Made by a program: the position numbers and the translations under genes
Notes under the pieces: generated by a model
What the model was told of the DNA's origin: nothing
What the model saw: the letters and a program-made list of their open reading frames with translations, nothing else
The model's database searches: none
Part shown: piece by piece, positions 3,229-32,540 of the stretch
How the letters are laid out: each line of letters opens with the position of its first letter
How positions within the stretch are numbered: the first letter of the stretch is position 1
Origin: Klebsormidium nitens
Lineage: Eukaryota > Plantae > Klebsormidiophyceae
Direction of reading: 5' to 3'
NCBI GenBank assembly: GCA_000708835.1
Contig: DF237130.1
Location: 62,001-126,000, forward strand
DNA: 64,000 nucleotides

Positions 3229-4978
3229 AATTGGCCTATTTACATTATCTGCATCAGCGGCTGTCGCTAGGCCAGGATCCGGCGGACTCCGAGAAACGGA
3301 ATGCCGGAAAAGCGGAATGACGGCCTGCAGTCACGATGTCGGCCTTGGGCCGGCCTCATCATCATGCATCATGAGTCATGCGGAGCCTCATGGCCTCATG
3401 CACATAATGGCGGCCCGATCCTGCAGTACTGTGTCATCATTCATGATCGGCATTCCAAAAAGCACACCGATCGCAGTGTCGTAGCAGCCCCATGCCTTCA
3501 ATGCCTTTGATGCATGGGTATGGGCTTATGAAAAGAGAACATCGCAAAGAAGCGTCCGCGCTTCTGCAACCAAGGACAAATCTCACAGCATCCGTCGCAG
3601 AAGTCAATATCACAACAGCTTTAGGCGAGGAGGGGCAGAAACGTCTAGCAAATACGACTTGCATATGGAGTGTTGCGCGCGGCGCCAGTCCCATTTTCAG
3701 CGGCTGCTCTGAAGTTGCCTGAAAAGACTCCGACGCAGGTTGCTAAATCAGAGCTGACAAGGTAGTGAAGAAGAACTTTCGGAAACCATATACAGGCAAT
3801 CCACAATTCAAGGGAGATGGAGCGAAGAAGGGATGCCGTAGCACATGGAACGACAATCAATCCAAGTCTCCGAGTTCCAGCTACGATATGCAGCTAATTC
3901 TGTGCCAGATTCTGCATCAGTCGGCTAGTAGGGGCAAGTCACATGGACTCATCCTAACGACAGCTGCTAGGTTGAGTCTGAGACTTGTGGGACTCCGTTT
4001 AGCAGCTCCGATGATCGACCGGCATTCGAGCATTCCGCCCGCATTCCGGTGCTCACAGCTCTATCTGAGCACTGCATACTTTATTGAGGCGCACCAAAAC
4101 CTCTCTCACGAACGATGAAGGATTGATGCATATAGTAGGTTGTTGTGAACACAGTTGCGTTTGACATCATGGTGCACTGCTGTCTTGTTGAAAGGTTGCC
4201 ATGTTAAAAAGAAGTTGGTCGGCGGCTCGCCAAGCGGCTGCCGATATGGGCAACTAATTGAGCAAACTGGAGTGAAGGAGCTTTTCGCGATTGGGACTGC
4301 GGTGGACATCCGAGGGAATCTCGGTAACATTGCTTCCAACAGAGACGTACATCCGGGTCTGCAGCGCAGCGGTGAATCGTATTGTTCTCACTTAAAATAT
4401 CCGGATACAATATTCCATTATAAATTTCTTGATAGGCACGCAGGTCTCAACGTCGAGGTGGTCTCTTCCCCCTAGAACTTTCGAGACATCCACACTGATT
4501 CTGAGATTGTCAAGAACTCAACTTATGGTACGCGCGACTTGTTTATTGGGATCGAATGACGAGAGGACTGATCACGTCGGCAATACGTTTGAGCACCTGT
4601 CTGCTTGCAACCCTCTCCAGTATCAATCACTAGCAGAACGGTGATCGCAACCCTCTCGTTTGATCGTTTCTAGCAAAAATTGTCTACTACGGTCTACCAA
4701 TCATCTTGACCCGTGACTGACTCAAAGCCAAAAAGTATCGAGCCAGCATGATACATGGTGAAGCTGGACCTTCTTTCAGAAAGGTTGACTTCTCGCTTGG
4801 AATGACTCTCCTCTCGCGGGCGGATGATCTGACTCTCTATAGGCTTGCAAAATGTGGGGCCGGTGACCCTCTCGAAAGTAGCAGCCGTGGCAATTTGGAC
4901 CCCTTGTGGACTCTTGAAAAATGTGCCAACGCAGCGTTGTACCCAGGGTATGGTCCAGATAAATAAGGCCGAAGTCCC

Positions 4979-7900
4979 TTAAGCACACCGAGGAACTGCG
5001 CCCGGAGCCCCCGTGGGGCACGGGGTCGAGCAGCACACGTAAGTCTGCCCGTTGGCCGCGAAGCACTGCATATCACAAAGCCGAAAGATCCTTAGCTCGG
5101 TTTGAAGGTTTTGGTCACAGAAATGGGCTTTCTGAAAGAGACGGCGTCTTACAGCCAGGCCAAAAAGCAGCAGCTTGCGCATCTTGGCCGGACGACGGTG
5201 TCTGTACCTTGTGCCGCGCCAAGAAAATAAACGTCAGAAGCACGTCCTCCCATTCTAAACCGAAGAGCCGACAAGATATAACTTCCGGAAACGTAAGGAC
5301 TGGTAAAAGCAACAAGAACACATGGGACAATGGTCGGTTGCATTTGGGCTGACCAGAATCAAAACGGAGGGATGCATCACGGTTCGCCCAGCCATGAGAT
5401 TCTTTCACTCAGTTGGCAATTCCTCGTCGACTTTTTGCCTTTCCACCCTCGTCTCAGCCATTTGAGCAAATACACCAGTTGCGTGCTTCATCACTCAAGA
5501 ACGCCCACTTGCAGAATAGGCACCTCATTCACTCATAGTAGTACTCCCTCCAAGTTCGAAGCCGCACCTGATTGGGGGCCGACCCGTAGGGGTCGCAGGT
5601 ACCCCCCACGGGGAGGACCTGAGGGGTCGTGGTCGGGGCCGGCGTGGTGGCCGCCGGTGTGCCGCTGGGGGGGGTGGAAGCGGGGGTGCCGCTGGGGGGG
5701 GTAGAAGTGGGCGTGCTGCCCGGGGTGGTAGAGGCCGGGGTAGAAGTCGGCCCGGAGGTACCGGTGGTCGGGGCCGGGGTGGCCGTGGCGAAGCAGGCGG
5801 TCGGGACCGGGGCGGGGGTGCCGCTGCAGACGGGGTCGACGCCGGGCTGGGTGTTGGGGCACGCGGTCGCGCAGCAGATGTAGCGGTTGCCGGCGGAGTT
5901 GAAGCACTGGAAACAGAAAAGACGGGGGTGTCGGGTGTCAGGATAGACCAGTCAGAGGTGTTGAGAAGTTTCCAAATCAACTCAGCCGATGCGAAGTAGG
6001 GGATGCGATTTGGGAACACGGGCGCCAAGAGAAGGAATTATGGGTTCAACGGAATTAGAGGCTAGATACGATATCGGTCTCTCCTGGAGGAGAGGACTGT
6101 TGTAGCAGAATCTCGTTATCGGTTCCGCTTTCATTTCAGGAGCATTGGTAGCCGGGCTCAGGTATGGAAGGGAAGGTAAGAATACCGGTCGACGTTTCGC
6201 TGTGCTTTAGCTGCAGGTCGAGTGTTCTAAGGGGGCTATTAGCAATGGCTCACTTTTGGTATCGACACGTGTCCTTACTTCTGGTAAGGACACGTGGCGC
6301 AGAAGTGACAAGGTCAGAATCGCTGCTGCGAACGCTAGTCACTGATTGTCTCCTGATAGGGCACAGGGAAAGCTTGGACGGATTGGCAGGGATTTTGGCA
6401 ACTCGACTGGATGCGCTCGGCAAGATCCCCGCAGAGGAAGCCTTCAATCCTTTCTAAACGGCAGAACCTCCATTCGCTGTCTCAGGTGTTTATGTAAAAA
6501 AAGCTGCACTGGGGTCGGCCGTACCTGGTTGGGCGTCGGCCCGGCGTAGTCGCACACCCCGCCAACCGGGAAGGTTGGAGCCGGGGTTGCGGGGGGGCAG
6601 GGAACCGGGATGGTTGCTACCGGGGCATTGGCAGTGGCCGTAGGAGTGGGGGTGGGCGTGGCAGTGGCCGGGGCCGGGGCGGGAGCCGTAGCGGTGGGGG
6701 TGGGGGTAGGGGTGGCAGTGGCCGGGCCGTTGTCAGCCACGAGGTCGAGTCCGAAGATGAGGGGGTCGTGGTCGGAGGTGCGGTAGAATGAGTTGGGGTT
6801 GGCCAGGCCGGTGTCGCTCTGTAGAGGAGAAGAAGAGGGTTTGTGACGTGAGCAATTTTTGTTTGTTGAACCACAGGGCGGCTAGTCGAAAGAGGGCGCA
6901 GAACGGAGGGAAGAAAAAGGGGGGGCGATTCAGATGGATGCATGAGAAAGTGCTCTGCTTTTGAAGCCTGTCAAGCCTGTCAGAGAGGAATAATCTCAAC
7001 GAGGCGAAAAGGCAAGGCAAGCGGGATGCGTTCGGAAGGGGCTAACCGCTTTCAGACTTTTAACGGTGACGTCAATGCTCACGTGACAGAAGGGGGCCAC
7101 CGCTAGGGAGGTCGAGTATCTAGTGTGACGTCACGCTCACGAGCTAGAAGGGGACTTCTGCTCACAAAGTAACCCACACACAAACAAGCAAACAAATGCA
7201 CTTCTCTCTTTCGAAAGAAGGGAAGAGGGCAACAGCTAGGGAGTCGGGTATCTCGTGTGACGTCAGTGCTTACGGCATAGCCCAGCGCGATCTGCTCGTC
7301 GGCGTTGATGTGGAACTCGCCGACGCCCGTCACCTGGCTCACGAGCGACGGCGACGCGAGCGCGTGGTCCAGATAGCCCGACTCGCCGTTGAACACGTAT
7401 GAGTACGCGAAATCGCCGAGGAACTGGCGGATTAGGTTGGTGTAGCCCCCTGCCTCGAACGCCTTGATGGGGTCCTCCATAGCGTATGAGTTCATATCGC
7501 CCGCCAGAACGAAGTCGGGGTCGTTGCTGCCGGTGGGGTCGGTGGCCAGCCAGCGGACGAGCGCCTCGGCGGCGCGCTTACGGGTCAGGTTGCAGTTGCC
7601 CTGCCATAGCGTATGAGAAAGAGTTGTTGGAATCTGCCGCGACGTGAATAGAGCAGCAGCTCTACAAACCAGAAGATTTCGATGTTTCCTTGTGCCTAGG
7701 AGAAGGTACGTCAAGTCTGAAGGAACAGTCGACGTTTTTCGAGCAGCAGCTTTACAAACCAGAGAATTTCAGTGTTTCCTTGTGCCTGAGGAAGGTACGT
7801 CAGGTCTGAAGGAACAAGAGGTCGAGGTGACTGAGCTGATTACATTGAGAGCACGCACTGCCAACAACCTTGGGGAGTTGTTGACGAAAGAGGAGCAGAT

Positions 7901-10900
7901 GAACAATGTGCGAGAATGCGCAGACCAGTTCAGCTCCCACTCGCCTCAAACCACAGATTTCATATGCCACGTGATCGCAATGCTTGTCGTGACGTGGTTC
8001 AAAGAATCATGAACAGACCGTTATTACACAGTCAGTCGCAGGATTCGAAACGGATTCTACCCACCGCAACGGCGATACACCCACTCGTTGAGCCCGACTC
8101 AGCGCACTCTTAGCCAGGCCAAAGCACTTGTCTCAACTTCATGTCGAATAAGGGAAGTGCTTGAGGAACGGGTTTGGTTTGGGGGCTTAAAGTGGGTACG
8201 GGTGCGGAGCATGTTACTTCTAAGTTCCGATTTCTAAGTTGTTCTTTCCCAAGCACAGTCGACCTGCCCTTAGTTGATTTGAAATAAACGGAGGTCTCTT
8301 CTATTCCCTTTTGGAAGGGAAGGCTCTCCAAATGCAGATTGTTCCAGAAGACAACAACCGACGCGACACTTGCTACTCGCCGCACCTGGCCGTCGTTGTT
8401 GTCGGGGTCGCCCGCGCCGCACCCGCTGCCCTTGCTCTTGAGATGGTTTGCGACCACCGTAAACTTGGCCCCCGTGCTGATCTCCATATACGTCTGCGCG
8501 ACCGATGGGCGCTGGATGTCCGAGTTGAAGTCGGGGTCGATGTTCTTAGTGAGGGCCCGGGCCACGCCGACCGGGGTAACCGCGGAGACGCGGTACATCT
8601 GGCCGACCGTGATGGCGTCACTGCCCACGCACTGGCTGTTGCACTGCAAGGATAAGGGTTGACAATGACGTCGGCGCATGGGTGGAGGGTGACGTCGGCG
8701 CAGGGGTGGGAGGGACGGGTTGACTGGCTTTGGGGCAAGACAGAGACCTGACTTTCTTGCGGCGAAAAGAGAACCCGTTTGCTTCCGACATCTCGGGCAT
8801 TTCTTCGGGTTTTGGGGTTCCAGATCCGGGCATTGCCCCGGTAGAACAAATGCTAGCGCCCATAAGGCAATGCCAAGATGCGAAGGACTGCCGGATACAA
8901 GTCAGCACAAGCCTGCGTGTCGGTCCTGGTTAAAATGTGCTATTCAGCAAGCATGGTTGGGGCAGGCGCTTTGTCTCCAATCGTGTCCGTTTTCACTAAG
9001 CAAGCATCTTGTGTGCGTCTGCACCTTCTCTGGTCCAAAAGTGAGTCCTGTGCGTCCAACGCGGTATGATGCCAAGCCCCAGAAAGCTTTCACACGGATC
9101 TACAGCAGCAAACACATCTCACATACACGCGTCATGATGACGTCAGCGTCAGCTCACGTTGGGGTCGGTGCTGATGATGGAGGGGCTGCCGCCATCCCCG
9201 GTGTTGACCCTGATGAAGTCGAACGTGCCCGCGCCGACCTTTGCGTTCACGGCATTAACGAGCGCGACGATTGCGCTCCCGGCGTTGAACCCGTTGTTCT
9301 GCAGCTCTTGGAGGGTGTACACGTCAGCGTTCAGGGCTTCGATGGCGAGCACCGACTTGGACAGCTGCGTCTGGTATTCCTGCAGAAAGTGACATGAGCA
9401 GGTGGTCAATCTGCAGTCAAAAGCTAGCAGCAATTTTCAGGCTGGTAAAGCCGGTTTCATCCAGCTGGACATTGCAGGTTCAGAATATGAAAGCCAGCAC
9501 ACGTTTCAGGTATGCATAGGCTTCTCATGTGTTGAACTCAACTGCTGCAATATCATTCCTGCTTTTGGCGGAGCAACTCTACGCACTGAAAATGAGTTGC
9601 CTCCTATCCGCCGGGTTTTAATAGCCGGACGTTCGACTCGGCCACGCGACTCACGGCCTGATCGGAACACATCTTCCAAATACCGGCGCGAAAACGTTCG
9701 AAACGACATTCAGTGCTAAGCATCTGCGCTGAAAGCAGCCAAACCGGATTGTGAGCAAAGGTTTGGGGCCTGTTCTCACCTCAGGCGTGCTGGCGCCACG
9801 GCAGAGCGACGAGCTGCAGCCCGGGCCTTGCAGCGATGTGAAAAAGTTCTCCAGGTTGAACGCCACCACCTTGAGGCGCCCGCCCACCGCGGGGGGGGCG
9901 GTTGGGCGAGGGTTAGTGGCTGACGAGAAAGTGATGTTGGATGCGGGGGGGCTTGTGGGCTCCAGCAGGAACCCGTAGGAGTTCCCGAAAGACAGGTCCC
10001 CGACCAGGGGGCTGGTTAAGGTGTAACCCACGCGGATGGGGTTGCTGTCACTGAGGCCGGGGGCGGGGTAGGGAATCGGGTTAAGAGGCGAGCTGGAGCC
10101 GGTTCGGCTGGAGCCGTCGTCGATGAGGATGGTCTGGGCGGCGTTCGCGGCCGCGACAGCACGGGCGGGGTCGCCTGCAAAATCATGGGCGAAGGTCAGG
10201 TCACCAACTGACGACTCAAGAACATGTGGCTTTGAAAGCGCTGGATGGGGCAAATATGTCCGGCCTTTACATTTCCTTTTGAGGGGCTACGTTGGGAAGC
10301 TCGAGTGCTTTCAACAAATTGCTGCTGTGAGAAGAAGAGAGAGAGCGGCCATTCGCGTCAAACGAGCTTCTCTCAAGTGCCTTTCGATTAGAGATAGAGA
10401 CTCGCACACAAATCTTCACGAGGCTAAAAATCGAGGGAGAGACTACCTCAGAACAGAGCGGAGACACTTCCAAGCTTTGCAGGGCTTACGAAAACCCTGA
10501 TGAACAACGAGATACTCTGGGACTTCAAGGTGATAAGACGATGTTGATGCGTCAACAACTCTAACACGATGTTTATAAAGTGGGCCATATACGCAAAATA
10601 TAAGCCATCAAGTAGAGAGAAAAGGCGGCCCGACCTGGCGCGGCGATCTGGGTGGGGACGTAACGGCGGCCGTTGACGGACAGCTCAATCTCGCCGTAGA
10701 AGTCGTCTTGGAAGACGTCGGTCACCGTGAGTGGCTGCAAGTAGCAAGCTCATGGGAACGTTGGCAACCCGCAGAGGTAGAGAGTCGGAGCGCAAGCGGC
10801 CACATGTCTCCGCAAGTGGAGTGTGTTTTCTTACTGGGTGATTCATTCCAAGAAGCGAGATTGGACTGTTTTCTTCCTTGGCGAACCGCTGACCAGTACG

Positions 10901-13900
10901 GAGTAAGCAACTTTACTTGGCCAGACTTCGTTCGGTGTGCAATCAAAAGCTTGCTCGAGCATTATTTCGATAAGCGGTTCGCTTCGATCGCCTCTCTCGA
11001 GCATACTTGCTTCGAGTGTAACTAGGACGGGTTGGCAGCCTGAAGTCTAAAGTATTAGCTGTGGCTTACGCATGTGTTTAGAAGCATATACGGTCCCTTA
11101 AGGATTTGTTGGAAAGAAGGCAGATTCTTTGACATTGTCCTTGACGATCTCGCTGACAAAGCTTGTCATTGAAAGGATGACGACTTCAAAAGTTGCAAAA
11201 TAGGACGAAGGGAAGACAACAGCAGGTACACTCAGAGGGAGCCCAACAAAGAACGAGACCGAGCCACAAAAGGAGGGGGAGCCCATCACCTCCGGTCCGA
11301 AGCTGACGAGCATGCTGAGGTACTGGCGCAGGTTCTGCGCCATGGGGGACAGCATGATCGGCCGGACTGCGGGGAGGGCGTTCCCGATTGAACAGACGGC
11401 GACCGAAGTAATCATTGTGATCTCGGGGAGCCCATTGAAGTTGGCCACGGTGCCCGACACCTGGACCTCGTCACCAACGGCGGTCGCCATGAAATTGGCG
11501 CGAGAGCTGCCGAAGTAGACGAAGATGCCGTTAGAGGTCGTCGTGTCGTCGTCGGCTAGCATCTGTGAAGGAACGAGTCAGGAGTGTTTCGACGCGAAGG
11601 GGGGACCTGCTTGCAAATCAGTCCAGCAGCTTCGGAAGGAGCTGACACCAGCCGCCCTCCGCAACAAGGATAAAATGTTTGTAGAAAATGTAGTTGAGAT
11701 GGTCACCACAGCGGAACTGAGGGACTCCTTCTGAGGGAGGGGTCAGGATTGTTTTGACGCAAAGGTGGACAGGGGTGACTCTCAGAGGAGCGGGTGAGGA
11801 GCGGGGCGAAGGTGCGGCTTCTTTCCTGTGGCGATTGTCCCGGAACTTCGTGAGTACCAGACATTCGTCGAGCACGTTAACCCCAAGCACGATCATTCAC
11901 GGGGAGAAAAGCAGAGGCTGAAAGACAAGGTCGAGCACGTTCATTCACGGGAAAGAAAGGAGAGGCAGAAAGAGGATTTGAGCAGCTCGACATCGGCAGA
12001 TGGAAGTGTGTTGCGGTAGAGCGACCGAGAACGGGTCGCCTCGTTACTTGGGAACAGCTTCTGACAGTCACCAAATAATGCATGTGATTAGAATAACTAA
12101 CAGAACATTTACTCGCAAGAGTAGCTTTAGAACCGTTGTAATTGAAGAGCCATGCTTCCCCAGGAGTGCAGAATCGAATTACGTTCTCACGATGATGGCA
12201 GCAGTTGACCCTGAGGTGACAGACGTTTTAATTCAGGATTGCAAGCGAGCTCAAGGAAGATCTCGTATTGCAGCCCTCGGACCCAACTTTGCGTCAAATT
12301 TTGACTGCAGAAGTCAGGGCTCATTATCCGAAGACAAGAGACAAGCGGCACAGTTCGACGCATCGAGAGCTCGTAGCCGAACAAGAAGTGCCTGCACGCT
12401 GCGGGTCGCACTTACGTCAGGCGTCTGGATGAAGAAGCCGGAGAGTTGGCCGGGTGCGTCGAACGCGCCCGTCAAAAACCCCCGCACAACCACCGTGGTG
12501 TTGACCAGGTTGGGTGCGGCTCCGTTCCCATTGATCGTGGAGATCGGCGTCTCCCCAGCCGTGCTAGTGCAAGAAGGGGCAGTGCCGGTGGGGGCGGGAG
12601 TCCCGGTCCCAGAAGTGGTTGGCGCTGGAGATAAGGATAAAGTTCAATACCTATAAGGACCTAAGACACGCCCAGGGAACGGGTGGGGTTGGTATGGTGG
12701 TTAGGGTGGGTGCCGGTGCGGAGCGCGCCATGTTCGTTGGTTAGGGGTGTTAGTTAGTTTTCTGTCCCAGGTACTTTCTTATAGGTATTAGATCCTTCTA
12801 GATTCTAAACTTGATGGGTATCGTTGGATTCGTCGGGACAGAAAGAATTGTTGCTGTGCTTTCTGAGAGGCCAAAAATATAAGGCCCGGAAGATCGTCCC
12901 TCTCGATCTCAAGGAACCCACTGCAAACGCTGTCCACTCGCAGCGGCTACAGTTGTGGAATGGTCCTTCCGAGAGATTGAAAACAGCTTTTGTGAAAGTT
13001 TTCGGCTAAGGACATTGTGAGTTCCTATATCTACTGTCGAGTCTGTGTAAGCTTAAACACTTCGAGGGGCGAGATGACTGTCGTGGATGTCACGACGAGA
13101 CGGATTCCAAGCGGGTAGTCCTCCGTAAAGCGGAGGCGTGACAACAGAGACGGCTTACTGGTGGGAGGTCGAAGTTGTTAACAGCAAACAACAAGGAATA
13201 GCGTCATGTTTAGAAACGTCGATGATGAATCTTGTGGGCTCTTAACTTACTCCTTCCGCTGGGTGAACACAAACTAGCCAAGTTCAAAAGCTCCGCTGAT
13301 CTCCCTGCTATATTACAAAAGATGACACTTCTCGAGTTTGCAACGACAAAAACGGACCCGAAGGTTGCTTTCAAACAAGGATGGCCCTGATTGCCCATCA
13401 AAGAGGGCGTGTCACCGGGGCGCAACATGAGCAGCATTCATGATACCAAGCAAAAGACCCCTTTTCCCGGCGACCCAAGAGCAGAGGAGCACGCTGCACG
13501 GTCGCCCTGTGACGTCATTTGATGCGATGCTAGACTCACAAGGAGTGGCTGAGCCTGAGCAGGCGTTGGCAGTTCCCGGGGTAGTGCTGACCAGGACGAA
13601 GTCAACACCGTTATCGTCCGTGTCAGTGCCGTCAGGACACCTAGACAAGGAGGGACAGTATTAGGAATCGGAATTGGACCAGATTCAGCCGATAAACGGA
13701 TCAAAGGCAGCCCACAGATCCATCCAAAGAACCTGGCATCACCAAATGCAATAAGATCCGGAGAGATCATAGTCCACGAAGTAAGACGTTGACTGTGCTT
13801 CTTAGTCGAAGAAGTAGGGTGCAGGGGCTTGCTTGAAGCTAGCAGCACGGCTGTTTTCAAGCTCCCAGTCGACTGTTGGAGAGGGAAGAGAGGACGTACT

Positions 13901-16342
13901 TTTCCAAAGACCTTCTTAGCCTTTACGAAAACTTCAACGCAGTAAAAGTCGTCGGAGGCTACAAGCTTGTACACGAGAAGCACTCCCCCTTCTCAAAATT
14001 GCTAGAAATCCTGACCCACAAGCTTTAAGCACACACCTTTGGCAGGCATACAATTTGATGAGATCACATAAGTCCAGACCTGGACGACCTTAGCCATCAA
14101 ACCCTTTTGACAATCGCTTTCCAGCAGGCCTCATGATACTCATTCTCACCATAATAAACCACATATGATTCGAGAACAGACTAAGTTGCCTGTGGCCGGA
14201 AATACTGAAAATGAGCCTCAAACGTGAGCCCCAAGCGGAAGCCTCAAAAGTTTGAAAGGAATGCATGCACCTTGCAGAGGAGTCATCCAGAGTCTTAGAA
14301 CTGGGCTATCCACTTCCTTCCAGTCAGAGTACTTAACCCCGCTAAGCCAGCACCCGTTTGCAAACATTGACTCAAGCAACAGCTGCAAGCACCTGAGCTG
14401 CTAAAACCTGACGCAACTCGCGGATACTCACCTGGAGATGGATGTGGTGCCAGCGTCGGTGTCGGTTACCGCACTGGTGCCCTCCGAGTAGCCGGGAATC
14501 AATCCCTCATACGAGACCCTGTCGATGATGTTTCCAGAAGGGTCTGTAAGGCCCATGGCGTCCGGGGCTCCATTCTGGATTAGGTTGTTGTCGGGGCCGT
14601 TTGTCTGCAAGAGGGGGTTTTCAAACAGTGGTGAATGAAGCTGGGACCAGAGAGGGTTGGGCAGGAAAGAGGGGTTAATGAGTGGTTAGGCAGTGGGAAA
14701 GGGGGTAGAGCTGATAACTAGGAATGCGAAAAAGGTGCAAGAAAGTATCAAGGCAACAGACCATCAATATCATTGATCAGGCAGGCATTCTGACAGAGGG
14801 GTTAAGTACACAGGGTCAGGAGAATGTAGACCACGCAAACGCGGGATATAAAAGCAATCAGGCAACGAGACAGTGGTGTTGAGGGTACTAGTCTGTGTGC
14901 ACGAGTCTAGTTGGTTGAAAGGATGGGAATGTCATGCCGTATAATCAGAAACTGATACTGTAGCCAGGTGACCATACTACAAGCATACTATGTTGCGATA
15001 AGGTTTCAGGGCTACTTGAGGGTGGGGTCCATGCAAGAGCCAACTTGAGGTTAAGGAAAGGGTTAAGAGAGTCTACAATACAGCGGTAAAGCTACCCAGA
15101 TGGCAGTACTCTTTTGCTGACAAGAACATTGTATCCCAAACTGGAAGAGATATGCTGTTACCCTGCATTGAACAAGCCTCTACGAAACAAGTTGGCAAGA
15201 TTGGCAGGACCAGGCTTGCCATTCTGCTGAGATGACAAATATAATGAAAAGGGCAAAACCAGGAGTGATTCTCTGCCCCTGCCAAGCTGCTAATGCTGTT
15301 TAATCCATGCACGCACTGTGCTTTACCTTGCCTTTGAAGATGTGGAAATCAACATTGAGGTTCCTGATTGTCCAGACGTACATACCCAATTATTAGACTC
15401 ATTTAGATCAGACTTAATTCGCAGGTTGCTGCAACTTTTAGCAGCAGAACTGAGGGGGATTGTCTATTTCAAATTCCAAGTTCACTGAGACATCTGACCT
15501 CTGAAGCCAACAACTTCAGCTCAGACCAAATGGCCAGGCCACCTCATGCTGAGCCTGTAGAACCAACTGGGAGCTTTAATTGCAACGGACAATTGCGAGA
15601 GTCGATCTGGCTTCTTGCCGATATTAACCGCCTGGTTAGCACAAATGCAGCCTAAGATGGAAAATGGAAATTTGGATGCCAATGAGAACTCAGATAGGCC
15701 ATTGCGTGCAGTGGAAAGCTTTTCAATGAATGCGGCCATTCTACAGCCGAAAGGAATGACTGGCGCAATATGTCAGTTCTCAACTGACCCACCCGAGTTT
15801 CAACTCTAGCCCAATCAGTCTTCCGCAGCACATAATCATCAGAACCCCCATTCACTGACACTCGGACTAAGTTTGGAAGATATGTCATCATTAACCCCTG
15901 ATCGAGACAGGCCAGAGAACAAGCCCAGTCTCCCCTTGACTTGACCACATTTCACCCTGCAGTAGAAGGCTCTCCTATTAGCTCCTTGGCTGATCGCACC
16001 TGGTGAAAATGCATTGCATTTGCCACTCACCTGATTGCAGTTTGGCACGGTCCCCGCCGTTGAGCAGATCACAAAGTAACCCCCTGGGGCCAGCGTCACT
16101 GGGGCAAGTGGAATCGTCAAGTATATGGCATTGTTGGCCCCATTCACAAGCTGGAGGTTCCAATTCGTGAGGTTGATGTTGGACGCTCCAACATTTTTGA
16201 GCTCAATGAATTCCGTAGTGTCAGTGCCAGGCTGATCATAGTCGATTTCGTTGATGACCAGAGAGGTGGACACGGCGGCGGAGAGGGCGGCGGAGGAGAA
16301 GAGAACCAGGAGGGCGAGCAGGAGCTGGCGGGAGGCGACCAT
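4979..16342 (-). CDS. Secreted ExeM/NucH-like extracellular nuclease: signal peptide + LTD + OB-fold-like region + EEP domain + T/P stalk + 2 Cys-rich modules (gene A, 1029 aa)
   Basis: 13 exons, all GT-AG and frame-consistent: 16342-16031, 14604-14432, 13640-13540, 12624-12416, 11562-11290, 10734-10635, 10174-9780, 9379-9158, 8643-8386, 7600-7274, 6818-6525, 5906-5568, 5065-4979 (total 3090 nt). Signal peptide MVASRQLLLALLVLFSSAALSA. LTD motifs VINEIDYDQPGTDTTEFIELKN and LIQNGAPDAMGL. OB-like motifs GFFIQ..D...TSNGIFVY and VGDEVQVSGTV. EEP motifs AFNLENF, LQEL, VANHLKSKG, LAGDMNSY, YLDHAL and SDHDP. Confidence 0.9.
7651..7816. repeat. Imperfect tandem duplication, 90-bp period, in intron of gene A
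   Basis: GAGCAGCAGCT(C/T)TACAAACCAGA...TGTTTCCTTGTGCCT...AAGGTACGTCA(A/G)GTCTGAAGGAACA begins at 7651 and again at 7741. Confidence 0.9.
12646..12789. repeat. Short inverted-repeat-bounded segment (possible degenerate MITE) in intron 3 of gene A
   Basis: AATACCTATAAG (12646-12657) and its exact reverse complement CTTATAGGTATT (12778-12789). It can be read as TA-flanked TIRs. No second copy seen in the window. Confidence 0.4.
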
Positions 16343-23590: not shown

Positions 23591-25393
23591 CCTCTCTATC
23601 TGTTCCTAAGTTCTGAAGTTCTTGTAGCGGCTGATCAGAAATTGCTTCAGAAGATTCGCTGTCTTCTGCAGACCCCGACAAGCAAAGTCCTTGGGCTCTG
23701 TTACCCCTCTGTTATCAGCCCAGACTTTGTGATCCCAATATTCCGTTAACAAAATTTTGGTTCAAAAGTAAAGAAGGCTTAGAATTCCTTGAAGTCTCTT
23801 AGTCTTTTGTGCACTGCATTCTTACGGACTGGTTTGCCTGGTTTGAAGCCTCAGTGGAAGCCTGAAAGCCTGGAAGAAGCTGAGAAGCCTGGTTTGCGAG
23901 TCCTGTAGACAAGAGAGATCGACCGGGGCGCGGAACCCGCCATGCAGTGGCCGCGCCCGGCCGGCCTGGAGGAGCGGGCGCGCGGCTGCAAATCTGCACT
24001 GCATGCAAACCCCGAAACCCCGGCGCGTTAGTCGAACTAACGCAAAACTAAACCCGGACCACGTTAACCGTTTCCGGGTTCGGCCGGCTTGCCGAGCCAG
24101 ACTCAGCCAGTGGAGCTGCAACATCGAGACCGTCCAAGATGGGAGGCGCCGGATCGAACGGAGTATAAGTATAGAAGTCAGGATACCGTACTTGTTGTCA
24201 GATTCAAAACTTGATAGCCGGCTGACAGACTCAGACTCCCGAGTCCTGTTCCGATACTCCCGAGCAGGGGTGCGCGTTTCAGATTCTGCTCTGTGAACCG
24301 CTCGCGGGCTGTACCTACCAACGTACGGTAGTTCGGGTATTTGCAACCACGCGTACCGATCGCACAGATGTTTTCCAATTCTCTGGGTTTACACTGTACA
24401 GCCTCTGCAAGCAGCAAAGCGGTAGGTGCGTCTACCATGGGTACCGGTAGACCGAAAATCACCTCAAGTGCCAGGGCCCAGCACATATAATATACCGCTT
24501 TTCAATATCGGCACCTTCGACGCAAAATAGTTAATTATGAAACGTTTGAAACTTTCGGAAGACCCAGCGCTACCTGCTAAAAAGAATCGTTATCGACCAT
24601 TATCGCCCTTGAATAATTATTTAAAACTTTCAGTAATAAATATTTTTCAGTAATTATTAAATTTTCGCCGAAATAAAAAAGCAGTACGGTACTGTATCAC
24701 GTGCCTCAGAAAACAATAACTCCGAGAAACTTTCAATACAAAAACTCAATTCTCCACTGACGTCAGAGCCTTTTCACTCTTTGATCTGTCTACAAAGTGT
24801 AATCACTTGTTTCCTGTCGATCCCTGCTGAGGGGAATAAGTTCCTGCTGACATCTGCATCATAATATGTCGGCACACTTGATTGGCCGAATCGGAAAAGA
24901 AACATGACGTTTGTACACCTGAACTACTGGCATAAAGATTCAATACCACTTCAAGGTTTATCATGTATGATGTAGGTAGTAGGTACCATGTTGTTTGTAG
25001 CCGGCGCAGGTAGACTCCAGCTGCCAGGTTTGAAGTTTCATCGCCATGAGCGAACGCGATTGAACGAAGCTTTCGTGCACTGAAAGTGGGCCGGGCATTC
25101 ACTGGAGACACTGAATGCAGTCACCGGGAGTGCCAAGTAGGTAGAAAGGCGCACTGCCTTTTATTAGGTTAGACTGTATTAAACCTTCAAGTTATCCTTC
25201 AGAGTGCGGTAGGTACCTAGATTAATGATCCTCTAGGCAAGGGACTGAATTACCTAGGTAATAGAAACTGCAGACCTCGGTCACTGCACAGCTGCATTTT
25301 GGCACGTCCTCTAAACAGAGCAGTGAGCTCATTCTGAAGTCAACTGGAAAAGGGACGGTACAATCCGGCTTGAGTGTCAAGCACGGTGCGGCG

Positions 25394-28300
25394 ATGGCTG
25401 TGTGGGGGCTCCCTTTGCTGGTGGTGCTTTTGCTGGCGACAACTGGTGTGAATGCCAGGTAAGCATTGCGCCGCTTATGACAATGCAGTCCGTCTGTCTA
25501 GTGCAGAGCTTCACCTTGGATAGCCTAGACATGGATAGAGCGCTGGAAACTTCGATTGCAGATTCTAGATTGACCAGCACATTCTGCAAAACATAATGCT
25601 GCCTCATTGCAAACGGACCAACAATGCCAAGCCAGAGTGATAACCCCAGCTTGCTAGAGTTTTGCTGGGTTCGCATCAAGATGGGTTTTGGCAAACACCC
25701 TAAAAGCGAAAGAAAGATATATTGAAAGAAAAATATAAGATAATGGGAAGCTCGGATCAAGCCTGTTATAGTCGAATGTCTGCACGCACAAATTGCCTCA
25801 GTGCGCCCTTTGGCCCGCAACAGGTATGCTGCCACCTAGGTCTGTTGGCAGTCCCATCTTATGTTGATTCTTTCAACGATCTCTTAAGCTTGTAGACTGA
25901 ATTCGACCGCTAGGCTTTCACTAAATGTGGTCTGACAAGACCCACCTCTAGCACTGCTGCCACCGTCAATCTAAGTAGGCAGAGTCACCGCCCTGCGCCC
26001 TAATCTGACGTCACTATTTCATGAAGCAGAGCCCTGACCGAGCGGCGCCAGGTGGCACAGAGTGGGGCGACTGCGGTCTTCATTGATGAGATTCACTGGG
26101 AGAACGCGATTCTTGACTTTGGTGAGGCATGCATAGGGAACCACGTGTGTCATGGAGGCACCCCAAAGTCTACCCTTGCAACAAGGTCTCTGTTGAGACA
26201 ACCCTTTCTTCCCCTGTCGAAGCAGGTCCTGTCAGGGTTCAGAAGTTAAGGCGAACACTGCTTCGTTCTATATGTTGACCTGGGAACAGTCTCAAAAGGT
26301 CTCGAAGGACTTTGCTGTCTTTCTGCAGTGGCAATGGTCCTTCTTTCCTAACCGTCATGTGGTGGATACAACTTTCTGAGATGGGTATAGACAGAGACAG
26401 TGCAAGGACGTTGAAAGTGGCAGAGGGCTAGTGAGCTCTAGCACAATGAAGAAGTGGCCAGTCCTCAGGATCAGGTGTTCAACTCAGGGACTGCCGACCA
26501 CTTATTTGTCTAACTAATCTTTCAAAATGTGCATGGCCTTTCTGAAGCACGTTTTGCACGTTGTTCACATTAAGCCAAAGGACCTCTGCCTGTCAGTTAA
26601 GCGGCCCTCTGCCTCTGTCTCTCAGGGGAGGCTGTTGAGGTCTTTGGGCCTCTGGGGCTGGACATTGCCGGGTACGTCCTGACGCGCTACGCGGGTTTCC
26701 TCAACGATGTGGGCCAGGCGTGTAACACCCCTGACTGCATTGCGGCTGGGTATGAGTTCACCTTCCCTCCAAACACCATCCTCACCGACCCAGACAATAC
26801 CGGGGTGAGACAGCAAAAAGGCCCCAGCGACCAAGTGCTCTTTCGTCTGCAGGATTTGTACTATGGGGCTGCGCGCAGCCGGTTTTCCCTGGCCGTACGG
26901 TCTTTTGATACTTGTTCAGCAGTTTTTGCCCCTCTTACATGTGCTTGTATCGCGTGATGCACCCGCAGTAAAGTTGTCTGTGATTGCAGTGCAATGTCAA
27001 GGCAGAGTTTGAGGACGATCCTCTTCGGCTTTTGATTTGACAGTTCTTCTTGTCTAAGACAAGCTGCTCACTTTCATTTTGATATTCCTCTGCTTATTCC
27101 CCTCGGCACTATGATTCTCGGTGGCACGAAGTTCTGCCTCAGGATATGTAGGCAGCATGGGTGTGCGTATCCTGATTTGGACGTTCAATGCCATGCCTGA
27201 TTGAACATTGCTGTGCTACTTGCTGAAAGAGCAACCACTTGCCTCAGTCACAAAGCAGAGCTCCGTCTACTCATCTGACCCACTTGTATTTGCAACACCC
27301 CATCAGCTGCCTGTAACCATGGGCAGACAACTTTGGGCAGTGCAACTGCGCACCTGCACAAGAATTCCGATAGCTCTTCTTCTGGCCCAGGTTCGTCCAG
27401 CTTCGCAGCCCCGATTTGGTGTCTCGACGAGCAGATTGGACATAATTCCTCACGATTTTCGCAAAGAAGCCTACATTCAAGAAAGTTTTTCTGATTGACC
27501 CTAAAACCAGCTAACCCTAAAACCCCAACTACCTGCAGTCTGGGGCTGGCACCGTGGTGGTTGTCTTCCCCCCGGAGGGCCTCCCAAACGTCGGTGCCCA
27601 GATTTCGCTTTCGGACACCACCGGACAGGTCCTGGACTACCTGACGTATGCCTCGCTGGGAAGCCTTGCGCGCACAACTCCCGCGTCCGTGGGTGCCGCC
27701 CTTGGGCTCACTCCGTGAGTCCTTCCGATACTGCACTCCGAACAGGCAACCCCTGAGTTAAGGTTTTCGTGTCAATAACTCAGTTTCTGCGATTTTCAGA
27801 ATGGGACATACTGCCTTTCAAATTCGAAGCCGGCATCAGAACAGAACCAGAACATGACGTTAGGAATATTTGCAGTATGATACGCTTCAAAGCTTCTGCA
27901 CGTCGCTGCATCAAGCTCGGCTGTGAAGAGTATCTGGACTTTTCAGGTTCGCGTCTCCTTTGACTCACAGTGCGCTGTCAACGACCATGTGTTTAACACG
28001 AGCATTTGTTTGCTCTCACAGAAAGCTTTGCCCTTAAACCACGATTGGTTGAAGGCATCGAACCAGAAATGAACCACGTTTCCATGGTAGAAGGGCACCT
28101 AATCAACCACGGACCAAGCTTGGTTAACACTAACTATTTCCTGCAACAATCCTAAGGTGGCCCACTCATAGCAGGCTTTTCCATTTCTGCTTCCATCATG
28201 TTATCTCCACAGCGGCTCAGAGGCTTCCCTGATAGATCATACATTGGTCAGCCGGTCAACTTTCGTTGGCGTGACCTGGCCGGGGTGACGTCAGCTTAGA

Positions 28301-31300
28301 GACTGGCCCTCCTGCCAGCGATGCCTTCAGCCTTATGAAGGCTCGTGACAGGGCCGGAGCAAACAGCAAAGCGCTTGCACGAAATTTTGATGCGTTTGTC
28401 TCCACGGTTGGCAAAAGTCGATGATCTCTTCGCTGAGGTTTTTACTTCACAAGAGCGTCGGAAGCAAGTCCACATCTGTCTGCCTCCAAGCTGACGTCAC
28501 ACTCCTCCCCGCAGTGACGTCGTCACCACCCAAGAGAGCGGCTCCGCCCCTGCGGGCCTGTCGGTGCAGCGCACCGGGGCCACCACGTGGCGGGATCCCC
28601 CTGGCAACAACACGTTCGGCAAGGTCTACCCGGATTACATCACCGCCGACCAAATACCCTTGTGCCGCGTTCTCGCGGACGGGAGCATCGCATACGCCGC
28701 TAACGGGAATTTCTCCTGCGGAGCATTCCAGAGCACCGTCTACGTTTCGCCGGTGACCCAGCCCCCCAAGTGGGCGGATGGGCCCCGGATCATCGGGCCT
28801 GGAAAGCTGCCCGATGCCGCGGCGACAGCAGCTCTCCTCGCAGACACCGGTGAGAGCCACTTCCTCCTTTACTGGGTTAAGCTTGTCAATTAGTGGGTTA
28901 AGCTTGTCATTGAGTGGGTAAGCTTGTCATAGAAACAATTGTTCGTGTCTGCAGGACAAGAAGACTTTATTTTTTCACCACATACGGGTGAGGGTGTGCA
29001 ACCTGCTGTACACTTGCGCTCAAATATTTCAACGAGGCCATGGGTCGAAGCGGGTCGGCGGCCTCGCATTGAAGGCGTGTGCCCCGCAGCATCTAGCTGG
29101 CTTCAAACCTCGTTGAAAGGATCTAAAACTTCTCGGAGCACACCAATCTCGATTAACTTTCACTCTGCAACAGACTTACTGACTCACACAAGTTTCTCCA
29201 CTAAAAGTGGCAAGTTGCTTGAGAGAAGCTCAGTGTACTCAACAAAAAGGCACGGTCGCGGCTCTACTTCGCACTTCCTCTTGCGAAGGTGCTCAAAGTG
29301 AACAGGTGCACATTTCACTCCGTCTGAGAATCAAGATACTGTCCTGGTCCCTTGCAGGATTTCAAGGAACCCCCGCGGCCACTCCTGCCCCGACCACCCC
29401 GGCCCCCACCACCCCCGCCCCGACGTTCCGCGTTCCGTGCCCGACTTCCCCGGTCGGCGGAATCTGCGACTTCCAGGGACCAACACCCAATCAGGTACGC
29501 CGGTTCGAGAGGACTCCATCCCTAGTTTCTTGATGGACCTAACCAACGGATTCATAACCTCAGAATCGAAAGCCAAGGACTGAAAGACAAATGCATAAAC
29601 GGGCTTCCGGTCCGAGGGCTCAACCACAAGAATGAAGACTAGCGGCTTGCGCTCCAAGACGCCTTGTGCGTTCAGAGCCGTCTGCTCCTTCTCTTTTTCT
29701 TAATGGGGATGCTCGGCTTGTCTTGTCCATCCGGGCTTGAGCGACTCAGCGGGGTGCTGTTGGGCTTCACGCCCTTTCGAAGTTTTGAAATGGGTTGTCC
29801 TGTTACAACAAAAAGATGAACGGCGAGGTTCAGAGATCAATTGCAGCGGACATCGAAACGTTTCGTCGTCTTTCCTTGCGGTGCACCTGCCATTCCGCCT
29901 CTGCCATTTATGGGTCTCACTCCATATCGCGCGTGCATCATAAGACTGAGGGTCGTGCTTCTGTGTCTTCAGAAAGACTTAAGGAGCCCATGACGAAGAT
30001 TTCTAAACCTTTCCACTTCACCTTTCTGAGCAAATCAAAATCGTCGGTGAGCCTGTCTACTCCGCCACACAAGAGTTACTCTCCCACTTCGCCTGGCCAA
30101 TGCTATATTCCAAAAGTCTTACAGCCCCTTGACCGCGACCCAGAAATTTAGTGCAGTTTTGCACGCAACTCAACCATTTCTCCCCTTCCAGTGCTTCAAC
30201 GCCGCCGGCAACCGCTTCATCTGCTGCGCGACCGTGTGCTCGAACACCCCGGGCGGGGACCCCGTTTGCGGCCCTGCCGAGCCCGGCTGCTTCGCCACGG
30301 CCACCCCGGCCCCGACCACCGGTACCCCCGGGCCGACAACTTCCGCCCCGGCTCCTACCACCGAGCCCATTTCTACCCCCGGGCCGACAACTTCTGCCCC
30401 GGTTTCTACAACTGAGCCCACTTCGACCCCGGCTCCTACCACTGGTGGGCCGACCTCTACCCCGGTTCCTACAACCGTGCCGACTTCTACGCCGGGCCCT
30501 ACGGCCACCCCGAGCAGTACCCCCGCGCCCACCACGCCGGGCCCCACCGCCACCCCCCAGATCCAGCCCGTGGGGGGTACATGCGACCCGTACGGGCCGA
30601 CCCCCAATCAGGTGCGGCTTGAATCTGGGAACAAGATTGAAGCTGTCGGGACGCGTCTGTTCTCGTGGGCCCTCGTAGGTGGCAAGGTAATTGCGTGTGG
30701 GGCTAGACGATGTGGGAACAGCTGGAGAGTAAGTTAAGATTGTGAAGTTACGAATACAATACTCCATGGCTACGCAAAAGCTACGCGTCTCCTGCGCGTT
30801 TCTCGCGCTTATAGTAGTCTAATCTTCCCCCTAAGGCAGATGGATTCTTCTCGTCTCGTGGTTACTTTCACCACTGCTCGTGCGCCACGAAGATTGAACC
30901 TTGCAGAATTAGCAAGCATCCTAATCTGCAAGTTTATATTGATCCTCCTGGCTCGGCCTGGACAGGTGCTTCTTTGGAAGTTGCCCACTTCTTGGTGAGC
31001 CTTTTCAAGTGTCTCTTCTTCGTAGAAGTATTCATTTTGACTGAACTTTATCGTCGGTTCCGGAAAACGGTGAGAATCTGCCTGTGCATGGCAAGACGCA
31101 ACATTCGCAATCTGCTGCTTCCGGGACTGGCCAGACGACGCTGTGCGCTCTTTTCAAAACCCGTTCAGAAAGTGACTCAATGAACACATTTGATACAATA
31201 CACCATTGAAGCTGACAACTCTTCGCCCTGTGTTGTGCAGTGCTTTGCTTCCAACGGACAGACTTACGTCTGCTGCCAGACCGCCTGCAGCCCGGAGGCT

Positions 31301-31327
31301 CCCGGCCAATTTCCCAAATGCGTTTAA
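25394..31327 (+). CDS. Secreted LTD-containing protein with T/P stalk and 2 Cys-rich modules, no nuclease domain (gene B, 496 aa)
   Basis: 8 frame-consistent GT-AG exons: 25394-25458, 26030-26121, 26626-26804, 27539-27714, 28515-28849, 29358-29494, 30192-30611, 31241-31327 (1491 nt). Signal peptide MAVWGLPLLVVLLLATTGVNA. LTD-like motifs VFIDEIHWEN..DFGEAVEVFGPLGLDIAGYVL, GLPNVGAQISLSDTTGQVLDYLTY and QESGSAPAGLSVQRTG...NNTFG. The C-terminal three exons are homologous to those of gene A. Confidence 0.85.
28873..28932. repeat. 3 x 21-bp minisatellite in intron of gene B
   Basis: TGGGT(T)AAGCTTGTCA unit starts at 28873, 28894 and 28915. Confidence 0.9.
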
Positions 31328-32540
31328 GAGCCCTCCAGCTAGTTTTACGTGGCCGAGATCGTCGCTCTAAATATGCGTCACACAATTAAGAGCTTAATCT
31401 AGGGCTGCGCTCCTAACTTTCGGGTCTGCTTTAGCTCAGACGCTCGCACATTGATGAAATAGGCTATCCTTCTGCGAGGGAAGAGTCGTTGCAAGCAGCT
31501 TTTTGATGGAGAGGGTCTAGCTTCGTGTTGTATCGGTCCAGCACCTCTTTGGGGGTGCTTCGGTATTGAGCCAGTCGAGAGTTGAGATGAGCTTAGTCCA
31601 GGACATTGCAGTACTTGTCAAAGAATTGTTACATCAGGATAAAGCAAGCGAACACACTCTTCAGACGCAGTGCCGACCTGATTGATGCTTTCGATCAATG
31701 ATTTCAATAAACAGGTTCGGTTGCGCACAGCGAGAGTCGAAGTTTTGACATTTCAGAGTAGATTCACGAAATAAGAAGACATCTGATGTTGAGGTTAGCT
31801 GAGGAGAACAACAACAGGCGAGAGATCCGCGCGAACTTTTCAAACACTTTAAAACACTTCTGAACTCGATCTTTCGATGGATTATCAATGTTCAGCTTTG
31901 ATCCATGCGCACTGAATCGCGGCCCTGGTAGGCATTTGTATTCAAGTTTTAACCCTCATTGCATGCTGTCGCACATGCTGCCTACAGCACCATTCCGTGG
32001 TCGGCCCGCCGCGCCCGACCCATGTCATTGCCTAGTAGTATATCCGACGCGAGAACAAGGACGGTTGCAGGGGCGCTGTGCTGCGCCTGCAATACGTCAT
32101 TCAACGTCCGATGAGTCCAGGCTCGTTGTTCAATATACTCACTTAAAATTAGGTATACTAATTCCGACGGCACCACTCATTTGCATTAAGTAAAATCGAC
32201 ACGGATATCGAGTGATTCAAGTTGCGCCAGCGCTTAAGCTAGCCTAGATCGACAAGCGTGTCACTCGGAAGCAGCGCCAGCGGAAACACACAGGTTTGAT
32301 TACGGCCGCCGGCCATGCATGGCTGCGTAAACGTCATGTGCGGCGCCGGGCCTGCGTGTGCATGGGCGTTGGCATTCTCTGATGTACTCGATGCTCAACA
32401 TCACTGGAATACTCACTAATTAATCCGGAATGATCATAGTGGGAATCTGCATGCGTCAGTGTACGTCCATACCAAACACATTGACGGTTCCGGACCTGGT
32501 CCCCTATTATGTTTGACAGACCACAAATTTGACGACAATG

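Follow-up and report, generated by a model that had tools for sequence, protein, structure and literature searches.

Two genes in a 64-kb stretch of the Klebsormidium nitens genome (NIES-2285, contig DF237130.1 of assembly GCA_000708835.1, positions 62,001 to 126,000 of the forward strand; in the following the window) end in a cysteine-rich module which is spliced, expressed, under purifying selection, attached to differing cargos and without detectable relative in known families. The module comprises about 42 residues with six Cys and is present in two copies each at the C-terminus of gene A (minus strand) and of gene B (plus strand). We rate the chances as about even that it is a non-catalytic tether to the cell wall or matrix, the most probable of the roles considered.

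Layout, splicing and selection of the module

A six-frame scan with regular expressions detected exactly four first halves (P-V-G-G-x-C, then nine residues ending in P-N-Q) and four second halves (C-F, eight residues, C-C, three residues, C, nine to ten residues, C) in the window. All four copies exhibit the Cys spacing C-x9-C-x9-CC-x3-C-x9/10-C. In copy 1 of both genes, and only there, the core is flanked by one additional Cys at either end, which makes eight Cys in total. An earlier note on this DNA had given the positions of the copies, their spacing and the flanking Cys pair, all of which were found correct in the scan and by direct reading. Its observation that an intron splits every copy holds as well: in four of four copies GT follows directly after the first half and AG directly precedes the second half, placing a phase-0 intron between the Gln of P-N-Q and the second Cys (Cys2). 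The features are, in the direction of transcription:

6597 to 6602, minus strand: Pro-Cys upstream of gene A copy 1 (A1), first Cys of the extra pair (direct reading of the open reading frame 6444 to 6740)
6525 to 6569, minus strand: first half of A1, P-V-G-G-V-C to P-N-Q (regular expression; exon bounds from transcript contigs)
5907 to 6524, minus strand: phase-0 intron of 618 nt, GT..AG, within A1 between Gln and Cys2 (joint 5906|6525 in contigs)
5826 to 5906, minus strand: second half of A1, Cys2 to Cys6 (regular expression; codon comparison)
5790 to 5795, minus strand: Cys-Phe downstream of A1, second Cys of the extra pair (direct reading; alignment A2)
5613 to 5789, minus strand: Thr/Pro/Ser/Gly-rich linker between A1 and A2, in the same exon as both adjoining half-modules (alignment of exon pieces)
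5568 to 5612, minus strand: first half of gene A copy 2 (A2; regular expression; transcript contigs)
5066 to 5567, minus strand: phase-0 intron of 502 nt, GT..AG, within A2 (joint 5065|5568 in contigs)
4979 to 5065, minus strand: second half of A2 (4985 to 5065), then terminal Ala and stop codon (4979 to 4981; regular expression; contigs)
29435 to 29494, plus strand: Pro-Cys flank and first half (29450 to 29494) of gene B copy 1 (B1; regular expression; match to the annotated protein)
29495 to 30191, plus strand: phase-0 intron of 697 nt, GT..AG, within B1 (flanking exon translations abut in the annotated protein)
30192 to 30293, plus strand: second half of B1 (30192 to 30269) and Cys-Phe flank (regular expression; annotated protein)
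30294 to 30566, plus strand: Thr/Pro-rich linker between B1 and B2 (annotated protein; alignment)
30567 to 30611, plus strand: first half of gene B copy 2 (B2; regular expression; annotated protein)
30612 to 31240, plus strand: phase-0 intron of 629 nt, GT..AG, within B2 (splice ends; annotated protein)
31241 to 31327, plus strand: second half of B2 (31241 to 31321), then terminal Val and stop codon (regular expression; annotated protein)

For gene A, contigs of the public runs X1, X2, X5 and X6 (three studies; the run type was only guessed as RNA) were compared with positions 4700-10600 of the window. The joint 5906|6525 of copy A1 was present in contigs of all four runs and the joint 5065|5568 of copy A2 in those of X2, X5 and X6, both with GT..AG ends on the minus strand. 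Altogether six introns of gene A are backed by contigs (5065|5568, 5906|6525, 6818|7274, 7599|8385, 8643|9158 and 9378|9779). Since these contigs skip introns with GT..AG ends they are spliced transcripts, and both introns within the modules of gene A are removed exactly as had been modelled from the sequence. The introns of gene B are taken from the public annotation and from its paralogy with gene A. When translated, the three exons of its tail form abutting exact substrings (residues 284-328, 329-468 and 469-496) of KFL_001810160 (P0001), a K. nitens protein of 496 residues whose locus (L006) equals positions 24394-32327 of the window base for base.

Comparison of the module codons of gene A with those of gene B (counts summed exon by exon) resulted in a dN/dS of about 0.28 and a dS of about 0.52. 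Because of this dN/dS ratio the copies are under purifying selection and did not arise by chance. Between the genes A1 pairs with B1 and A2 with B2, indicating that the two-module tail predates its sharing by the two genes. In blastn the similarity of the genes was limited to the exons and a few splice-site bases, from which we conclude that the tail has been shared for a long time. Recent copying between the genes had been considered, as a global alignment of introns and 3' untranslated regions scored better than mononucleotide shuffles, but we dropped it in view of the blastn result and the dS of about 0.5.

Three minor observations concern the contigs of gene A. A low-depth contig of X1 (5054-5442) runs into the last intron, which we read as unspliced RNA, either pre-mRNA or intron retention; retention of this intron would end the protein ahead of the final half-module. 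Within the intron 7600-8384, a piece of 33 bases (8179-8211) is the only part matched by contigs of X1, X5 and X6, with unrelated sequence on both sides; it possibly represents a short repeat or a fragment of a different transcript. At position 9992 an A to G difference, found in run X1 alone, might reflect variation between strains or alleles or an error in the contig.

Proteins carrying the module and conservation of its residues

Apart from the tail, the two genes of the window encode:

6570 to 16342, minus strand: rest of gene A, with signal peptide, Lamin Tail Domain (LTD) and a nuclease of the ExeM/NucH type (endonuclease/exonuclease/phosphatase; Pfam, NCBIfam, contigs)
25394 to 29357, plus strand: rest of gene B, with signal peptide and a weak LTD-like region (KFL_001810160)

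Gene A starts at 16342, and its first exon contains a visible signal peptide and the LTD (PF00932, E = 3e-14). Further exon pieces matched NF033681 (E = 4e-43, 5e-19 and 2e-11) and PF03372, and matched weakly the related bacterial NCBIfam model NF033680 'exonuc_ExeM-GG'. By these matches gene A is a predicted bacterial-type ExeM/NucH extracellular nuclease in an intron-rich algal gene. Its exon 6525-6818 comprises the end of the nuclease domain, a Thr/Pro/Ala linker and the first half of A1. In gene B the corresponding first half of B1 terminates exon 29358-29494, which begins with a Thr/Pro linker. The LTD match of gene B is weak (E = 0.24) and a Pfam scan of KFL_001810160 found no nuclease domain. 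This protein shows no similarity to the first exon of gene A, which holds the LTD. We had considered gene B to be a truncated copy of gene A and dropped this idea, as KFL_001810160 is unlike that exon (the only one compared) and the similarity detected is confined to the tail.

A profile of the exon pieces (alignment A2) searched against 1.84 billion representative proteins (E <= 0.001) found four proteins, KFL_001810160, P0002, P0003 and P0004. P0002, from a JGI sample, has two modules. P0005 (387 residues), which clusters with P0002, shares 70% identity with K. nitens KFL_000460100 (P0006), and we therefore presume that its source is a related Klebsormidium. KFL_000460100 and KFL_001660180 (P0007) were obtained when a region of P0005 served as query. 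In P0005 and KFL_000460100, the latter with a signal peptide, a domain of about 290 residues without known family is present. KFL_001660180 consists of about five near-identical tandem modules with short spacers and almost nothing else; its annotated start looks doubtful. It is the next gene after a NAGPA-domain gene, which itself ends in two modules (locus L007, DF237115.1, 1-5714). Further searches added no carrier: JGI metagenome scans with the module alignments gave pattern matches of which none was confirmed by tblastn, and a word-based protein search with region 306-365 of KFL_001810160 returned this protein only. The same search with the middle exon of gene A found nothing at 62-198 residues, which reflects the limit of the length window and not absence.

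Two of the proteins found need a remark. P0003 is an ORF-style (open reading frame) gene call that reads into an intron; the underlying contig (L005:151-1350, Logan SRR23617307) encodes a tail of two modules that are interrupted by the same Gln^Cys introns. P0004, which stems from contigs of the read archive (L002-L004; L002:2165-2494, Logan SRR14092358), is a divergent variant with P-N-P for P-N-Q, without P-V-G-G and without intron. The residues after its module are presumably similar to the beginning of plant proteins of the phosphorylase superfamily (bark-storage-like).

Thus the module occurs on an ExeM/NucH nuclease, an LTD protein, a NAGPA-domain protein, a protein with an uncharacterised domain and a protein of modules only, and this variety of cargos indicates that it is independent of cargo activity. 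That it binds nucleic acids in the service of the gene A nuclease, as the type of this enzyme could suggest, is accordingly extremely improbable: the module is also attached to gene B, which lacks a nuclease domain, to the NAGPA-domain protein and to proteins of unknown type, and it is not basic.

The phase-0 intron between Gln and Cys2 interrupts all copies of the window and all copies at the loci L005, L007 and L008, the exception being the divergent variant of L002-L004. As the intron lies within each module, the exon that is repeated is permuted and reads 'second half - linker - first half'. At locus L007 a unit of about 800 nt, made up of exon and intron, is tandemly duplicated with 80% identity, and the roughly five modules of KFL_001660180 arose from such duplications. 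The number of modules thus grows by duplication of exon plus intron, with break points in introns and one whole module added by each event. Decayed remnants of half-modules were detected within introns of L007, too (2575-2604 and 3823-3909).

An alignment of 13 whole modules from five proteins (A5) was used to examine the single residues. Most of these modules fit the spacing given above, and the P0004 variant diverges with a shorter first loop. Invariant in 13/13 modules were the six Cys, P-N before Cys2, the Phe that follows Cys2 and one Gly of the next turn; Gln, Asn and the P-G of the last loop were nearly invariant. The aromatic residue before C-C is replaced by Ser in 5/13 modules and the aromatic of loop 1 is confined to genes A and B. 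As only the Phe after Cys2 is invariant among the aromatics, this weakens the argument for sugar stacking which the earlier note had drawn from three mostly aromatic positions.

Such poor conservation of candidate sugar-stacking aromatics would be expected, too, if the module bound a wall glycoprotein or formed intermolecular disulfides, so that the cargo, in place of being held by a polysaccharide, is built covalently or non-covalently into a protein network. The extra Cys pair outside the core in copy 1 of genes A and B could form such bonds. The even number of Cys per copy (six or eight), however, fits internal pairing, no partner is known and the arguments drawn from the layout fit a polysaccharide ligand equally well; we consider a protein-protein or cross-linking role unlikely. 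Still less probable, and in our opinion highly so, is a tag for folding, secretion or stability without any ligand, in which the disulfide knob would shield the C-terminus of the linker from proteases or aid quality control in the endoplasmic reticulum. Unrelated cargos and the poor conservation of surface residues besides Cys, Pro, Gly and one Phe are in line with a tag of this kind, but two to five copies per protein and the module-only protein KFL_001660180 are hard to explain by a cap, and purifying selection acts on non-Cys positions as well, e.g. P-N-Q and F-N.

Comparison with described domain families

The module had been noted as unrecognised, and none of our searches gave a significant match. 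Pfam-A scans of the whole proteins KFL_001810160, P0002, P0005, KFL_000460100 and KFL_001660180 found no family for the module at E <= 1, apart from one sub-threshold and implausible row for a Tc-toxin repeat. Scans of single exons were empty for the module, too, but these are uninformative as each exon contains only half a module. NCBIfam contained no match. A profile of the 13 modules against all PDB sequences produced noise (best E 0.55) and another PDB sequence search a best E of 0.36; feature searches of the ESM Atlas with the module gave no usable match. In a literature search we found no paper describing the module.

The earlier note had regarded the spacing as unlike hevein or CBM1, and indeed no Pfam match to CBM1, hevein, granulin or antifungal-peptide families was obtained. 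Fungal CBM1 is nevertheless similar in its general design. It is a small, disulfide-stabilised domain of about 35-45 residues, sits at the end of secreted enzymes behind glycosylated Ser/Thr/Pro-rich linkers, accompanies a large number of unrelated catalytic domains and may be present in several copies. The four Cys of CBM1 are spaced differently and a triad of aromatic residues is conserved, whereas the Klebsormidium module contains six Cys with a single invariant aromatic residue and does not match PF00734 at E <= 1; at the sequence level it is thus no member of CBM1. Hevein (CBM18, PF00187) shares with the module the richness in Cys and Gly, the CC pair, the repetition (in lectins) and the linker-borne attachment to enzymes. 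It contains eight Cys with another spacing and a conserved aromatic motif for sugar binding. We found neither a Pfam match to this family nor a hevein chain at E <= 10 in the PDB profile search. Granulin (PF00396), a ladder of CC pairs with twelve Cys, was not matched by Pfam either.

Chimeric arabinogalactan or Hyp-rich glycoproteins of streptophytes, e.g. the arabinogalactan proteins with a PAC domain, are secreted as well and join Ala-Pro, Thr-Pro or Ser-Pro repeats to a domain with six Cys. Repeats of this type are Hyp-O-glycosylated in land plants. Unlike in those proteins, the Klebsormidium module matches neither Pollen_Ole_e_1 nor another Pfam family, and the glycomodule connects an enzyme with the Cys module.

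Knottins are defined by the disulfides I-IV, II-V and III-VI and show the Cys order C-C-CC-C-C (PMC4695807). In their fold the third of these bonds threads the ring. The module, in which the six Cys are invariant, fits this order as the earlier note had pointed out. Like the knottins, including the plant peptides PAFP-S and Mj-AMP, it has a short CC-x3-C and a predicted small beta structure. It differs by loops 1 and 2 of nine residues each, by the lack of a sequence match to a solved knottin and by being a domain of large proteins instead of a free peptide. AlphaFold models of the module were of low confidence (mean pLDDT 58.8 with 5 and 55.6 with 13 aligned modules), and a beta-hairpin at Q-C-F and at the residues preceding C-C is common to the two. 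Searches with these low-confidence models yielded no usable match in Foldseek against the PDB (best E 5.6), no Z >= 2 in VIA-align wide and TM <= 0.42 in the Atlas shape search, where the row for progranulin (TM 0.42) carries no weight. A knottin fold is therefore neither shown nor excluded by the models: the order of the Cys fits, and the pLDDT is too low to read connectivity or knotting.

The knottin framework (PMC4695807) would also suit a defence peptide or inhibitor domain, i.e. a knottin-type antimicrobial or an inhibitor of proteases or amylases, acting on the cargo or freed by proteolysis. With about five near-identical modules and short spacers, KFL_001660180 resembles a polyprotein precursor. 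We regard such a function as rather improbable, since Pfam and PDB sequence searches gave no match to knottin, hevein or antifungal-peptide families, the modules of the alignment A5 are near neutral and not strongly cationic by direct reading, no dibasic or other obvious processing sites are located beside the copies and attachment to enzymes by long linkers is atypical for such peptides.

Putative role at the cell surface

The layout of a binding module, proposed in the earlier note, was supported by the proteins found: these have a signal peptide and unrelated N-terminal domains and carry the module at the C-terminus, separated by Thr/Pro linkers, as is usual for targeting or binding modules. 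Flexible Thr/Pro linkers belong to a type which undergoes O-glycosylation in streptophytes. We infer that the six Cys probably form three disulfides, with a possible fourth from the extra pair in copy 1 of genes A and B, and that the linkers, mostly Thr/Pro-rich, are probably O-glycosylated or hydroxyproline-rich. The module would then bind a polymer of the cell wall or matrix and keep the cargo, the ExeM/NucH nuclease in gene A and the LTD protein in gene B, at the cell surface, where several copies (two to five per protein) would add avidity. The tether is suggested by the independence from cargo, the C-terminal placement behind Thr/Pro linkers, the two to five copies and the purifying selection. 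The 'GG' in the model name 'exonuc_ExeM-GG' presumably stands for the C-terminal sorting signal GlyGly-CTERM. If so, the algal tail may sit where the bacterial ExeM relatives carry a surface-anchoring signal.

Regarding the ligand, the Klebsormidium wall reportedly contains callose. Neutral rhamno- and galacto-xylans without uronic acids occur in it as well (PMC11688530). Callose and the neutral rhamno- or galacto-xylans are thus candidate ligands. A more specific form of the tether, which we put forward tentatively and think less probable than its being wrong, is a family of carbohydrate-binding modules, perhaps of a knottin-like kind, that is confined to the Klebsormidium lineage and directed at such an unusual wall polymer. 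In this family the permuted exon, bounded by the same phase-0 intron, would allow modules to be gained or lost together with exon-plus-intron units and the tail to move between genes.

Several points weigh against a sugar-binding tether of this kind. Sequence searches detected no homology to any carbohydrate-binding module family, and the candidate aromatics for sugar stacking are not conserved beyond genes A and B. With the pLDDT values given above a flat binding face and the disulfide pattern are unreadable. Some members (P0002, P0005 and KFL_000460100) have short linkers between the modules, and in the P0004 variant the module appears to be N-terminal to its cargo. Restriction to Klebsormidium is provisional, as the exon-based profile is permuted, includes the linker and has limited sensitivity.

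Klebsormidium inhabits soil and rock. It is an early-branching relative of the land plants, from which it differs in its wall chemistry. A module present on many secreted proteins could show how extracellular enzymes, including a bacterial-type nuclease, stay at the surface through drying and re-wetting. If it binds a defined polymer, it would constitute a new family of binding modules and could directly serve to probe for that polymer. With an intron within each copy, the module clearly illustrates how domain repeats grow in nature via duplication of exon plus intron. The kind of module is familiar, since small linker-borne disulfide modules such as CBM1 are common to secreted enzymes; the family is narrow and we estimate its practical value as moderate.

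Outside the two genes, the minus strand of the window contains an uninterrupted open reading frame of 723 residues (33782-35953), rich in Glu, Arg, Ala and Leu and coiled-coil-like. Such a length without an intron is unusual among the genes read in the window.

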